A stretch of 63,915 nt of DNA, counting the filler, from Reticulomyxa filosa (Eukaryota; Protista; Foraminifera): NCBI GenBank assembly GCA_000512085.1. It is 24 parts of 24 records of this genome, joined end to end, with 100 filler letters (N's around TTAATTAATTAA, not from the genome) between each part and the next. Parts side by side here need not be neighbours in the genome. Positions count along the whole stretch, not along the records: positions 36,972 to 42,951 come from ASPP01025321.1; 23 more parts are not named here. One strand, written 5' to 3'. Positions 36,641 to 42,951 of the stretch are shown here, piece after piece (position 1 is the stretch's first letter; each line of letters starts with the position of its first letter). The notes beneath the pieces are model-generated. The model was not told the origin of the DNA. It made no database searches and saw only the letters and a program-made list of their open reading frames with translations. The position numbers and the translations under genes are program-made.

Positions 36641-37054
36641 TATCAGAATGTTACTGCTCTTTTGACCATTATGAAGAGAACAACTTGAACTTTAAACTTA
36701 CAATAAAGATTTTTTGTTATTACCAACTAACAAACATTTAAGAAAAATCGATAAAAGGTTTTTGATAAAAGTCAAAGTTTCACGTTTTTTCAATTCTTGT
36801 TGATTGTGTGAAAACACTGGTGTGACGGCAAGCAACAAAGACATACATGTGAGATTGTTATGCTCTTTTTTNNNNNNNNNNNNNNNNNNNNNNNNNNNNN
36901 NNNNNNNNNNNNNNNTTAATTAATTAANNNNNNNNNNNNNNNNNNNNNNNNNNNNNNNNNNNNNNNNNNNNTTTAAAACAAAACAAACAAAACAAAACAT
37001 TACGTATACAACACAACATAAAAAAAAAATAAAAAATAAAATAAAATACACTAG

Positions 37055-37838
37055 AACCAAAACATCAAACTTCCTATTAATGTTGATGAATACATGATGG
37101 ACGGAAGATACAACAAAGTATTGAGTTTGATGGACAGAGCCCCGGATAAATACTTTGGCATGTTTTTAGCTGAGTTGGAAAATGTTGTTCGGTATGTTTG
37201 CCAATTTTTGTTTTTGATAACATTATGTCAAATTGTTGTGCTCTCATAAAAGCAAGTGAGTTACAATCTTATCCCCCAATAAAAGCATGACTTTAGTTGA
37301 ATGCCCAAATAAATGACTACTTGCTTTTTCATTATTGCTAATTATCCATTGCTATTGTGTTTATCATTTGAAATAAAAAATTATAAACAAACAATTATTT
37401 TTTAAAAGTGGTTATACAAATTGAGAGATTAGAGATGTGTTGCATTGATTTGACGATTATTATAGAAATGAGATAGCAGAATCGTTACAACTTATCCATG
37501 ACAGTATGCCTGTTAGAGACAGTCTCAAAATACTGCGCTTGGCTGATGAGCGAGCTTTGCAAACTTATATTACTCAAGTTTTGTGTTTGTGTGATCACAG
37601 TCTTGCTCATTTATGTTGCATATATGCATATACATATATTTATTATTATTTTTTTTTTTTTTTTATAACTAGTTGAGATTGTTTGTTTGTGTGTTTCGAA
37701 TAGACCAATCGCAAATGGTCTGTTAAAGGAAACAAATTGATATTTGAAACAGTTACAGAAAAGAAAGTCAAAATTAATGCTATGGAAACTACCAAAGACA
37801 TGTTACAATTCACCGCAAATGTGGAAACAATTGTTTGA
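37055..37838 (+). CDS. RPN12: 26S proteasome lid subunit RPN12 (PSMD8), last three exons
   Basis: NIKLPINVDEYMMDGRYNKV..PDKYFGMFLAELENVVR|NEIAESL..|KWSV..MLQFTANVETIV*. It is absent from the ORF track because the exons are short. Confidence 0.85.
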
Positions 37839-38156
37839 GGGCAACTATGTCTTTCAGTTTTTGTTTTTTTTTTGCTTGAAATGGTTTCCATTTTCATTCA
37901 ATTCAATTCATTTCATTGGGTTGAGTTTACGATATTAAATTTTTGAGTCAAAATGATTGCACTGAACATTTCGTAAATGTATTAGTGAATAAAAAATTGA
38001 CACAAATAAAAACAATCGAATCATTACTCTCTTTGTATTAATTTCTTGAAGAAATAAGAGCTTATGTTAGTTAACAAAAAGATGAACATGTCAACAAGGG
38101 AGAAATTTATGAGTTAACGACACAGTTTGGGAAAAGGAAGTCGACAAGCCAGGAAA

Positions 38157-39765
38157 ATGGGAAATTGCTTAAGTGGGAAGCAAACCAGAGACCAACATAT
38201 CTCTTCCATCACTTACGCGAGTAATATCCCTAAAGGAGATGTTCAAAGCCCTCAAAGCGAGCCAACGTTTAATGAACAATCAGTAAAGACGGACAAAGAA
38301 ACAGAACTGACAAAAACGAAGGACCAGCAACAGAGTGAAAACGAAAGTAATTACATAACCGGTTCTGAATTTGGACCGGAAGCGGTCAAAATTGTCTCTG
38401 GTTTTTGGCTGGAGCATATCAAAAATCTAAGCAATGAAAAAAAAATGGTAACGCAATGTGACAAAAAAAGAGAAGCACAAACAAACACACAAAAAAAAAA
38501 AAACCACAATAATAACCACAAAACAGGAAACAGCAGTAACTCTCTACAGTTATTTATTTTGCAATTTGCCAGAATGTCGCCGGAATTTTTTAAAGCGTGG
38601 AACTGTGGAAAGTGTTGGGTCGCATTTTTTAGAAAGTGTACGTTGCAAAACTTTTCCAAAAAAAATTTTTTTTTTTTTTTCGGTGTGCCAAAGGACCATT
38701 TACAAAAAAAAAAAAAAAATGTATATCCAGATCGACGAACTGATACTAGCAGTGCAGCAAAGCACTGGAGCAGTGTTACAAGTGCGGTTGGCAAACTTGG
38801 GGGAGTTGTACCATAGTTTTGGAATCCGATCAACGAGTTACAATCGATTTTTACAAGCATTGCATCTGACATTCGAAGACTGTTGTGCTGATCATCGAGT
38901 ATACTCGCTACGGATTAAGTATTGCTTTGAGAGCATTTTTACCACAGCAGCAAAAGTTATCACCAGGAAAGACATTAGCGCGCTCTTTGGTGATCGTGTG
39001 CTTGACTTTTGGTCGTTGGAATTTTTGGATTCGTTCGACATCTGCTTGGCACATCCCACTGGTAAATATTTTTTTTTTTGAATCAAATATATGTTACATA
39101 GATACCTTTTTTAACCGATTTGTATGCACACAATAGAAAATTAATAAAAAAAAATAATTAGTACCTTCACTTCACATTATAAGTATATACAAATCTGTAC
39201 TCCTTTGGCTCTGATGGTCATTACACGAGTAAACAAAAAAAACGTATACTTCATAGGCAGGGAGTATTTTGACCGGTATCTCGAACAATCGTTTTGTTTG
39301 GAATATATGCACTTCTTGCGAGATTTTATCGTGTTCAAAGGACTTAAGTCTCAACAAGAGAGATTCGATAAAGCATCTCAAATTTTTTTAAATCACTTTT
39401 CTTTGAGCGCTGCAGAATACATTGATGTCCAGGACAACAGCATACACATTGAAAAGGTTTTTTATTTAAAAAAAAAAAAAAAAAAATACATATACTACAA
39501 ATACTTTGCTTGTATTATTAGTGTATTAATTAATTGTGCCCAAAAAAAAAAAAAAAAAAAAAAGTTGAGAGAAACGCTACTTCAGTACGCACAAAGCACC
39601 AGTCAAATGAAAGACCCTTCCGAAAGCTTAGCATTTGAATTGGACAACACACTTCTCGACAACGTGTACGTCGATGTGAAACAATGCATCGAGAAAGATA
39701 TTTGGCCGCAGTTCGTTAATGCAATTCAGTCGGTTATGGAGGCCACTCGTCCTCACGTGATATGA
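38157..39765 (+). CDS. Predicted N-acylated globin-like and RGS domain fusion protein (five exons)
   Basis: Exons 38157-38447, 38527-38637, 38731-39061, 39257-39456 and 39565-39765 join in frame at GT-AG sites. It starts MGNCLS, has a globin helix pattern, then RGS FDICLAHPTGREYFDRYLEQSFCLEYMHF..ASQIFLNHF..DIWPQFV. Confidence 0.75.
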
Positions 39766-40253
39766 CATTTTTGGGTTGCACGTTTGTGTGTTTTTTTCCT
39801 CCTACTTTTGAGATTTGATAACTTTATGAGGGGGGCGCTCTGCTCCCTTCCAACAAACGATGCAAACTGAAAATGTCACATGTGGCAAGTGTTTGCCCAA
39901 GCAAGATCTTTTTTTTTTGTTGTGATATGTTATTGATTCGTTAATTCATAAGTTTTATGTTTTGTATTTGCTTTTCTTTTTTTTTTCTGTTTCTGTTTTT
40001 CTTTGGTTTAATGTGAACGGATTTGTTTTGTATTTTTTTTTTTATGAGTTTTGGGAGAATGAACTATAACAGAGGAAGTTGTGACGTGTGCTCCCTTTTT
40101 CAAAAATTTTACCTTTGTTTCTGTGATGACGATTTTATGTTTGATAATAAAATTTTCCACTTTTTTTTTTTTCTACAATGAGATAACTTGAACAATGGTT
40201 GAAGTTGACAAGCTAAAAGTAAAAGAAACTTTTGTCAGTGGAAATACAACAAT

Positions 40254-42003
40254 TCAAACATATTTTGATGAAAAAGTCTTCTCTTCTTTATGTTCACAGT
40301 GTTGATTCACGGTCGTCGGGTCGTCGTTATCTCTGAGCTTGCATAAAAAAAACTCAATGCACACTAATGCTCATATCAACCACATACCATACCTTAAAAA
40401 CAGTGCGGAGCTGTCAACAATTTTTTTCAGTTGTTGAGTTTGCTCTTGAATTTTACTATTTGTTTGATTTCGCAGACTGAGATCGGTAGATTCCGCAGAT
40501 TGATTTACAGGTTGATGGGCAACGTGTATACAAAACGTTTGATTTTCAATTTTACTAGTTGTTTTGGAGTTTGCAATATTTTGGGATAGCTGCAACAAAA
40601 GATCAACAGAAGTTTTTGTACGTTTTTCTGAAAGGTTTCGTTGATTGTTTTTTTCTCTCAAGTTTTTTCCATTTTCATTTATTTGAATTGGCTCAAAAAT
40701 TGATGCAGATTCATTATGTTCTGTCAAATTTTCAAGCATTGTGGAATTGTGGGTGGCATTGTTACTTGAGTTTTCTTCTTGATTCGAAGTCTGTTGCGTT
40801 TGCAGTGCCAATCACCGAATAAGTGGTTAAAAGGTGCAAAGAATAAAAGTGATTTTTTTTTAAGAAACAGTTGTTATCAAACCAGGACAGTAGGGACTGG
40901 CGTAGTACTGCTTTGCTGCATTTTTGAATACTTTTCTTGTAAATCCTTTAATTGCTTTAGCTCATGCAATAGCTTTACGCTATCGGACTGAACTTTGCAC
41001 AACTTTTCGTCTTTAACTGTTAACAATTGCTATCGAGAAGGAGATGGGGAAAAAAAAAAAATCAACACAAATTTAGAGTGAGTCACATTTTATTTATTTT
41101 TTTTATTTTTTTTTGTGTATTAAAACAAAACTTTGAGATCGTGGATTTGCTGTTGAAATTTGGTTTCAATTTTGTGTCGTTCTTTTTCCAATATTTGTGT
41201 CAGCTGCTGCTGTAAATGGTCCGCCTTTCCTCCAACTTTTGACATTTCAAGAATGTATTCCATGTTTCTCCGTTTTTTTTCCGATTCTTCATATTTATTG
41301 ATCCATTCTTCCAACTCCCTCCTTTGTTCTCGAATCTTTCTTTCGACGTCACTGTCGATAACTTCCTCCACATGTTTTTTATTTGCTGGTTCGACTCTAT
41401 CTGCCGCATGCAAATTGTTTGGTTGTGAGCCATCTGCAGTCTTGTTATGGAGCTTATTGTTATTATTATTGTTGTTGTTGTTGTTGACATTATTGCTATT
41501 GCTATTGCTATTGCTATTGCTATTGCTATTGCTATTGCTATTGATATTGTTTACCTCATTAACATTTTGGAGTTTATACTTTATGTGAGAATTGGAGTCT
41601 GTGCAATTCATGTTTGATGGTAAAAAAACATTTTCTAAATCGTCGCAAGAGTTTGAATATAAGTCTTTGAGAGAAGAAGTTGAGTTTGTGATTATGCATG
41701 ACTGTGCAAGGAGTTTTTCAGCCTTCATTGTCGCAATGGACATACTCCGCTTGCTGACATTGCATTGATTCACATTTTCTTTTAACGGCAATGCTTGCAA
41801 GTTGGCGTTGGAGTCGTGTATTATTTTGCTTGGCGTGCTTGACACATTCGTCTCAACGGCAATCTTTTGCAATTGAATTAACTGAATTGTCTTCTGATCT
41901 AACACATCTTCCATCATTCGCTGTTGACGGTCATATGAGTCCAGTTCATCTTGTAGAGCCAATATCTGTTTTTGTTTGTTTTTCTTTCGTGATTTCGTGC
42001 ATC

Positions 42004-42041
<38 letters not shown>

Positions 42042-42951
42042 GTTATCATAATAAATAAATATGTGTAATAACAATAATAATAATAATAATAATTTTTTAT
42101 GTATACGTATAAGTGTGGCTCTCTTTTTGTCTCTTAACACTTTGGTCTCGATCGTTCAATCTCTTTGTCAACTGGATCATAATGTCTCGCTGCTTGATTA
42201 ACAGCTGTTTGTATCTCTCCACTTGTGCTTTGTCTTGCTCAATGAACTGCCTCTCTCTTTCTAAATCTTCGAGTTTTTTGTTGTAATCTTTGCGTATTTT
42301 CTGCTGTTCTTTTAAGATGGCCTCTCGAAACTCTGGAGTGTCTTCCACGTTGGAGGGCTTTCCTCCTACCAACAAACTGGAGCCCATCTGTTCTATTTTC
42401 CTCATCAACATCAGCTTTTCGTTTTTTTCAGACAGTAAGTCCGCGGAAAGTTTTTCCAAATGAACAATGGCTGCCATCTGTGTATATTTAAAAAACAAAA
42501 CAAAACCAAAAAAAAAAAAAAAAAAAATAGAGCCAATAATAAAAGGATATGTGCATGTTTACAAACATACAACAAAAGTATGGCAAAACTTTATCTCGGA
42601 CGGCTCTATTTCTTTGTTCCTCCAATTCAAGCACTTTTCTCATATCAACAACATTTTTGGATTTTTCAGCAAGCTGTGCTCGAAGTTTTTTCAACTCTTT
42701 TTCGTATTTGCGTAAAAGTGCTTTTTCATTCAGGTCCTCATTCACATGTGCAATGTTTTTAATCGTTTTTGCTCGGTTGGCAAATTTCAGTGTCGACAGC
42801 GACTCATTAAAGTGCTCCAAAGCTGGAGATATCATCGCCATCATCGTCGTCTTGCAATTTCCCCCCAAACTATCTTCGAGAATCCTTGTCAACTTGCTAT
42901 CGCGGTAAGGTACATGGCTCCGTTTCTTGGGATCTGTCAGTGCCGAAATTA
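40254..42951 (-). CDS. Kinesin: end of motor domain and coiled-coil tail (5' partial)
   Basis: [44 protein letters not shown], then coiled coil [26 protein letters not shown]. Confidence 0.92.
41455..41545 (-). repeat. Coding microsatellite (AATAGC)n followed by (AAC/AAT)n
   Basis: Encodes [15 protein letters not shown] in the kinesin tail. Confidence 0.9.

Follow-up and report, generated by a model that had tools for sequence, protein, structure and literature searches.

A foraminiferan globin-RGS fusion gene in Reticulomyxa filosa, predicted to encode a membrane-anchored protein with tyrosine at the proximal haem position

A 63,915-nucleotide stretch of DNA from the foraminiferan Reticulomyxa filosa (the whole of it is called the window here, and all positions count along it) contains, at 38157-39765 on the plus strand, an intact gene of five exons separated by four GT..AG introns, with a product of approximately 377 amino acids that starts MGNCLS. 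The gene lies on contig ASPP01025321.1, the whole 5,980-bp length of which, in the R. filosa assembly, makes up positions 36972-42951. Comparative sequence analysis firmly shows this to be a real gene whose predicted product joins an N-acylation motif, a globin fold and a regulator of G-protein signalling (RGS) fold, within a family found so far only in foraminifera, and it is just as firmly shown that the ancestral state of that family was a complete haem pocket. Overall, we consider it probable that the product is a membrane-anchored globin-RGS protein belonging to a family of haem sensors which act on G-alpha, and that the window copy is a derived member of it; acylation, haem binding, the G-alpha target and coupling between the two domains are all inferred.

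A phmmer scan of 1.84 billion representatives, together with two word-index searches, yielded approximately 35 family sequences, and every named member of the family is from a foraminiferan (R. filosa, Ammonia sp., Nonionella stella or Bolivina argentea). Proteins from the Ammonia MMETSP transcriptomes and from the Nonionella and Bolivina transcriptomes carry both Pfam families in one open reading frame (ORF), and because the MMETSP ORFs hold both domains the fusion is transcribed as a unit in Ammonia. The original prediction, which was made from the sequence alone, had named foraminiferan transcriptomes as the place to look for the architecture, and single transcripts with both domains are indeed present in marine foraminifera; the order that it proposed, of N-acylation motif, globin fold and RGS fold, is conserved in the family as judged by Pfam, profile and model matches on the homologues. 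In a maximum-likelihood (ML) tree there are three subfamilies, with the four R. filosa genes forming one clade (support 100/97) inside subfamily I. Nearly all full-length members start with Met-Gly, with a Cys at positions 3-5 in subfamily I, which makes the membrane-anchor motif a trait of the family. In the window gene the motif MGNCLS (38157-38174, +) offers Gly2 for N-myristoylation, Cys4 for palmitoylation and Ser6, and fits the N-myristoylation pattern G-{EDRKHPFYW}-x(2)-[STAGCN]-{P} (PROSITE PS00008). The most conserved segment of the family runs from globin helix H to the first RGS helices, which is compatible with, but no proof of, the two domains being rigidly coupled; when the P0006 globin domain with haem was set against the P0006 RGS domain in a complex prediction the score was 0.00, which speaks neither for nor against a contact between them. 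A feature search of the ESM Atlas gave no usable match, and a shape search there gave clusters with RGS domains only and no two-domain match.

Searches with the window gene were made exon by exon, along with two in-frame, stop-free read-throughs (38527-39060 and 39259-39762). On a profile built from marine sequences, with no Reticulomyxa sequence included, the five exon peptides are ordered and abutting (E values from 2e-9 to 5e-31) and the splice model is therefore not a chance joining; the five-exon layout is also common to the R. filosa paralogue loci L001, L002 and L003. All features are on the plus strand. Exon 1 (38157-38447, 97 codons) carries the start codon and MGNCLS, a linker of approximately 65 residues that is predicted to be disordered, and globin helix A (EAVKIVSGFW..), and it covers positions 1-100 of the marine-only hidden Markov model (HMM) with an E value of 2e-9. 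Intron 1 (38448-38526, 79 nt, GT..AG, 30% GC) is followed by exon 2 (38527-38637, 37 codons; HMM 102-135, E 5e-8), which encodes globin helices B and C and the first half of E. Intron 2 (38638-38730, 93 nt, GT..AG, 26% GC) is in frame and stop-free, and the paralogue P0002 and the marine homologues are colinear across its junction without the 31 extra residues. Exon 3 (38731-39061, 110 codons and one base; HMM 141-245, E 4.6e-31) encodes the second half of helix E and the whole of helices F, G and H, then the junction between the domains and the opening helix of the RGS domain; it shares 59-60% identity with the corresponding paralogue exons of L001 and L002. Intron 3 (39062-39256, 195 nt, GT..AG, 25% GC) is in phase 1 and splits a Gly codon, its join reading ..AHPTG-REYF.., identical to the sequence of homologues that have no intron there. 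The RGS core lies in exon 4 (39257-39456; HMM 247-306, E 1.7e-20), where Pfam PF00615 is found with an E value of 2.7e-5 (25.0 bits against a cut-off of 23.9). Intron 4 (39457-39564, 108 nt, GT..AG, 15% GC) is again in frame and stop-free, and paralogue locus L002 has a GT straight after the same ..IEK codon. Exon 5 (39565-39765; HMM 319-360, E 1.1e-11) encodes the C-terminal RGS helices (..EKDIWPQF..) and ends in the stop codon TGA at 39763-39765. The introns (15-30% GC) are rich in A/T homopolymers and the exons have a GC content of approximately 40%. The coordinates and five-exon structure of the original prediction are thus upheld by the GT..AG introns and by colinearity with the marine-only profile, and the strings that it had translated (MGNCLS, seven globin helix strings and CLEYMHF in the RGS domain) agree with our translations. 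Introns 2 and 4 being multiples of three and free of stops, their retention would place 31 or 36 Lys/Phe-rich residues in globin helix E or in the RGS domain respectively, with no truncation.

The public gene model of the locus is wrong and conceals the RGS domain. The public protein, ETO08140.1 (RFI_29246, P0001), has 275 amino acids, no RGS domain and half a globin, and is mis-spliced (window 38157-39081) in that introns 1 and 2 are translated, most of exon 2 is skipped and the end falls inside intron 3. The public models of the paralogues, P0002-P0004, also hold translated pieces of intron.

The evidence for the globin fold comes from the family as a whole. Pfam PF00042 scores above threshold in homologues P0005, P0006, P0008, P0010 and P0015 (24-36 bits against a cut-off of 22), and the family profile, when compared with solved structures, found Hell's Gate globin I (3s1i; HGb-I) with an E value of 2e-15 and HGbRL (3wfw) with an E value of 6e-13. 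These two are the nearest solved relatives; Pfam Protoglobin scored 14-21 bits on the homologues, below its cut-off of 25. An AlphaFold2 model of P0006 (Nonionella stella, 382 amino acids) has a disordered N-terminus of 85 residues, with a predicted local distance difference test score (pLDDT) below 50, and a body with pLDDT of approximately 85-95; by Foldseek it matched 3s1i with a template modelling (TM) score of 0.88 and a root mean square deviation (rmsd) of 2.1 Å, with neuroglobins next. The globin part of P0002, an R. filosa paralogue with 59% identity to exon 3 that shares the Tyr discussed below, was modelled with pLDDT 89.9 and a predicted TM score (pTM) of 0.84; its top PDB matches were all globins, and VIA-align superposed it on 3s1i with Z 14.8 and rmsd 2.3 Å over 131/131 residues. 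Single-sequence phmmer searches of exon 3 and of exons 4-5 against the PDB sequences gave chance hits only.

Helix positions in the haem pocket were set by profile alignment to Hell's Gate globin I (3s1i), in which Tyr29 is B10 and Gln50 is E7 (PMC11203436). The pocket of the family has Tyr at B10, Phe at CD1, Phe or Leu at E11 and Leu at F4, and the proximal residue F8 is His in 28 of the 31 family sequences, so that the homologues do carry the proximal ligand which the original prediction had singled out for checking. Tyr is found at F8 only in the window gene and in P0002 and P0003. In the window gene the F-helix region translates as LANLGELYHSFGI, with Tyr then His (TAC CAT, 38809-38814), and the Tyr codon at 38809-38811 aligns exactly with the proximal His F8 of the homologues and of 3s1i, the His falling at F9; the helix assignments of the original prediction, and its placing of Tyr at F8 with His one residue later, are borne out by this alignment to the homologues and Hell's Gate globin I. 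At E7 there is Gln in subfamilies II and III, whose place is taken by Thr in the marine members of subfamily I and by Val in R. filosa (38614-38616 in the window gene). Position E10 is mostly Lys in the family and this Lys is kept in most marine members; Lys E10 is a haem ligand in the closed form of HGbRL, with the same proposed for HGb-I, and His E10 is the distal ligand in Synechocystis haemoglobin (PMC11203436). The window gene has His at E10 (38623-38625) and retains Tyr B10 (38545-38547), Phe CD1 (38587-38589), Phe E11, Leu F4 and the FG Gly-Ile. The sister paralogues P0002 and P0003 have Cys or Ala at F9 and Glu at E10, so His F9 and His E10 of the window gene are not features of the clade. 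His F9 was considered as a substitute proximal ligand and dropped, as the sister Tyr paralogues have Cys and Ala there. His E10 together with Tyr F8 would allow a His/Tyr six-coordinate haem, and Glu stands at E10 in both sister paralogues.

The Tyr-bearing sequences form a clade in the ML tree (support 99/97) with the His-bearing P0004 as its sister, and because the clade is monophyletic with this sister a single change from His to Tyr explains the pattern. The proportion of synonymous differences (pS) between the window gene and each paralogue is approximately 0.8, which is saturated and indicates that the paralogues are old duplicates, and the proportion of non-synonymous differences (pN) is approximately 0.25, or 0.15-0.31 in the domain exons; per half, it is 0.24-0.30 for the globin exons and 0.15-0.38 for those of the RGS domain. 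The paralogues are thus under purifying selection, and by this measure of sequence divergence the globin half is constrained as strongly as the RGS half and so is still in use.

The RGS half is the more readily recognised in Pfam searches of the window gene, and the homologues score 36-53 bits for Pfam RGS. The family profile hits RGS18 (1e-13), RGS10, RGS5 and RGS4 in a range of 1e-9 to 1e-13, with the axin RGS domain also among the matches (E 1e-7), and residues ~228-382 of the P0006 model match RGS18, RGS16 and RGS8 by Foldseek with TM scores of 0.78-0.86; the 3/3 globin and RGS folds that the original prediction expected were thus both found in models of homologues. Residue equivalences were taken from profile alignments to RGS18 and RGS10, which share the FSEEN and EVNLD / QVNVE motifs with RGS4. 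The RGS4 residue numbering and G-alpha contact set (Ser85, Glu87, Asn88, Asn128, Asp163 and Arg167) are those reported in the 1AGR work. In the window gene Ser85 is replaced by Cys, Asn88 by Tyr (39304-39306), Trp92 by Leu, Asn128 by Asp (39424-39426) and Arg167 by Gln, with Glu87 and Asp163 (in exon 5) conserved as Glu and Asp, so two of the six contact residues are kept and both Asn are lost. The original prediction had noted that the Asn of the S.EN motif, which it regarded as the residue used by RGS proteins that are GTPase-activating proteins (GAPs), is replaced here (CLEYMHF); the replacement stands and the emphasis was imprecise, as in the structure of RGS4 with Gi-alpha1 (1AGR) Asn88 of S.EN is reportedly a G-alpha contact and Asn128, in the alpha5-alpha6 loop, is the residue usually said to be GAP-critical, which is Asp here. 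Across the whole family the Asn88 position is Tyr, Leu or Ile; Asn128 has its counterpart in the Asn of subfamilies II and III, and subfamily I has Glu or Asp there. The family also has a specific insertion of approximately 40 residues before the last RGS helices. By sequence and profile this is clearly an RGS fold, with GAP-active R4 proteins as its nearest relatives, and whether it is competent as a GAP is not something that can be read from the sequence.

Several other explanations have to be set against this evidence. That the gene is an artefact or dead, arising from chance joining of ORFs, from two neighbouring genes or from a decaying pseudogene, is highly improbable and has largely been refuted already: the very different public model without an RGS domain, the frame change in one paralogue (L002) and a splicing pattern known by comparison would suit it, but five exons with canonical splice sites abut in order on an independent marine profile, the same layout recurs at three paralogue loci, the window copy has neither a stop nor a frame break and has pN far below pS, and single two-domain transcripts exist in three other species. 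A greater, though still minor, likelihood attaches to the globin of the window copy and its two Tyr sisters being a haem-free pseudo-globin, which would do no more than give a membrane RGS protein an N-terminal module for structure or protein binding, without sensing gas or redox state. The change of His F8 to Tyr with Val at E7, the failure of a profile of the Tyr clade to find any solved globin and of the exon pieces to hit Pfam Globin, and the fact that the three Tyr paralogues do not share His F9 and His E10 are all in keeping with such a loss of haem, but the retention of Tyr B10, Phe CD1, Phe E11, Leu F4 and the FG Gly-Ile is not, and neither is a predicted fold that is that of a complete globin nor globin exons as constrained as the RGS exons; moreover Tyr is a known haem ligand, and its being kept in three paralogues with saturated synonymous sites is not expected under free drift.

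On the side of the RGS domain, it may be, although we doubt it, that this is an RGS-homology scaffold of the kind found in axin, GRK and sorting nexins and not a GAP, so that it would bind another partner, or bind G-alpha without speeding up hydrolysis, and the protein would be a haem-regulated adaptor. The absence of Asn from the Asn88 position in the whole family, and from the Asn128 position in many members (Asp, Glu or Met) including the window gene (Asp), the replacement of Trp92 by Leu, the axin match and the family-specific insertion between late helices would be explained in this way; against it, the best matches in both sequence and structure are the GAP-active R4-type RGS18, 10, 5, 8, 16 and 4, far ahead of axin, the Glu87 and Asp163 equivalents are kept in the window gene, Asn is retained at position 128 in subfamilies II and III, and plant AtRGS1, which reportedly has Glu in place of Asn128, is reportedly active as a GAP.

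The view that we prefer, of a membrane-anchored globin-RGS protein from a family of haem sensors acting on G-alpha, has a number of points weighing against it. Pfam Globin was not hit by the exon pieces of the window gene, in which three exons share the domain between them, and when the profile of the Tyr clade alone was compared with the PDB no solved globin was matched, which implies that the signature of the haem pocket is eroded; loss of haem and an altered ligation would explain this equally well. The AlphaFold models were built on alignments that include His-type homologues and so are not independent of homology, and the fold matches come from the homologues P0006 and P0002, with the splicing of the window gene deduced from comparison. 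GAP activity is uncertain because Asn88, Asn128, Ser85 and Arg167 are replaced by Tyr, Asp, Cys and Gln, and the G-alpha target is putative. Within the clade, exon 4 of L002 (ASPP01016115.1, 3611-3804, the gene of P0003) shifts frame by one base after ..PQERFEK, which could be decay or a mistake of the assembly at a homopolymer; this frame-shifted stretch is skipped in the public model of P0003.

If the preferred view of a haem-sensing family with a derived window copy is correct, N-myristoylation and palmitoylation of MGNCLS would tether the protein to the inner face of the membrane, from which a disordered linker, a 3-on-3 globin-fold domain, a short and highly conserved junction and the RGS domain would follow in order. 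In the family at large the globin domain would bind haem and report O2, NO (nitric oxide) or redox state, the RGS domain would bind activated G-alpha at the same membrane and alter the lifetime of its GTP-bound form, and the state of the ligand or redox couple would thereby tune G-protein signalling. The window copy belongs to a Reticulomyxa-specific subclade of three old paralogues in which one change turned His F8 into Tyr, and it has Val at E7. Its globin domain most probably binds haem in the ferric form through a tyrosinate, or else has turned into a regulatory module free of haem. With a tyrosinate ligand the haem would be like that of the haemoglobin M (Hb M) F8 Tyr variants in not carrying O2, and could respond to redox state, NO or haem supply. 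The original prediction had included O2 among the signals to be sensed, and for the window copy an O2 sensor is now the less likely reading given Tyr at F8, Val at E7 and the Tyr-clade profile that matched no solved globin. More speculatively, and with the odds in our opinion against it, foraminifera may have evolved their own eukaryotic version of the bacterial globin-coupled sensors, with a haem domain that is tethered to the membrane and exerts direct control over an RGS GAP. Were this true, O2, NO or redox state would set the lifetime of G-alpha-GTP without a receptor, and the Tyr-F8 copies would be a ferric-locked offshoot, perhaps with Tyr F8/His E10 ligation in the window gene, retuned to NO, sulfide, peroxide or free haem.

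The remainder of the contig holds a convergent kinesin gene on the minus strand (40371-42951) that is cut by the contig edge, with the end of a motor domain (Pfam PF00225, E 1e-13) followed by several coiled-coil-like exons and an Asn/Ser-rich stretch. A TATTGC microsatellite (9.8 copies, 41491-41549) falls within an ORF of the minus strand, where it codes for an (Asn-Ser)n run; a second microsatellite, an AAT repeat of 29 copies (42004-42093), lies in an apparent intron of the kinesin gene. Upstream of the globin-RGS gene, at 37094-37838 (+), short ORF pieces (e.g. MMDGRYNKVLSLMDRAPDKYF..) resemble exons of another gene and gave no Pfam match.

Full-text searches of the literature (globin with RGS, foraminifera, Rhizaria and Reticulomyxa) brought up no account of a globin-RGS fusion, in line with the original prediction, and none of globins in foraminifera. 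Automated Pfam labels on some relatives already list both families, so the architecture appears to be visible in databases and undescribed in the literature. The fusion is conserved in three subfamilies and at least four foraminiferal species, with nearly all of the full-length members having the Met-Gly anchor start. Haem sensors with an output domain are well known in bacteria, whereas eukaryotic links between globins and G-proteins rest mainly on the debated interaction of neuroglobin with Gi-alpha, and a covalent globin-RGS fusion makes such a link testable with two purified domains. Some foraminifera thrive in anoxic, nitrate-respiring sediments (PMC8153729 and related papers, which make no mention of globins), and in such sediments it would make physiological sense for motility or feeding signalling to take a gas or redox input.

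Among known proteins with Tyr at F8, Hb M Iwate, Hb M Hyde Park and the myoglobin H93Y mutant have the same change from His, with the Tyr phenolate ligating ferric haem and blocking the reversible binding of O2. These are disease or engineered variants of oxygen carriers, whereas in Reticulomyxa the Tyr is fixed and selected in three old signalling paralogues, and this natural switch is a built-in comparison of two haem chemistries on one scaffold. The R4-type RGS proteins (RGS18, RGS10, RGS5, RGS8, RGS16 and RGS4) share with the window gene the Pfam RGS domain, the helical fold and the Glu87 and Asp163 equivalents, and RGS4 and RGS16 are known to attach to the membrane through N-terminal lipidation; the window gene differs from them in having Tyr and Asp as the Asn88 and Asn128 equivalents, an insertion of ~40 residues and an N-terminal globin partner. 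N-acylated membrane globins are known from animals, namely vertebrate globin X (PMC3176823) and GLB-26 of C. elegans (PMC3520999), and like the foraminiferal family these begin Met-Gly with a Cys close by, are placed at the membrane and have been proposed to serve in sensing or redox chemistry instead of oxygen transport; they are, however, single-domain globins with His F8, and the foraminiferal acylation is predicted from sequence. Hell's Gate globin I, a bacterial, neuroglobin-like protein, is the best match in both sequence and structure, sharing Tyr B10 with the family and Gln E7 with subfamilies II and III, but it is a free-standing protein of a single domain (131-133 residues) that has His at F8 and lacks both a membrane anchor and an output domain.

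Two known systems come closer in their logic. Neuroglobin in its ferric form binds to Gi/o-alpha that carries GDP, serving as a dissociation inhibitor (PMC4842972), so that there too a globin is functionally tied to heterotrimeric G-alpha, and neuroglobin structures were among our fold matches; in that case it is the globin fold itself which is said to contact G-alpha, with no RGS domain, whereas here a separate, canonical RGS fold is covalently attached, and no homology beyond the globin fold is implied. Bacterial globin-coupled sensors, among which HGbRL of Methylacidiphilum infernorum (3wfw) has been called a putative member (PMC4476040), have like this family an N-terminal globin and a C-terminal signalling output domain in one chain, but the foraminiferal proteins are eukaryotic and apparently lipid-anchored, have as output an RGS domain that is not used by bacteria and, in the window gene, have Tyr F8 and His E10. 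The family is a new combination of two known modules, the logic of which is closest to that of the bacterial globin-coupled sensors and, by analogy, to that of neuroglobin with Gi-alpha.

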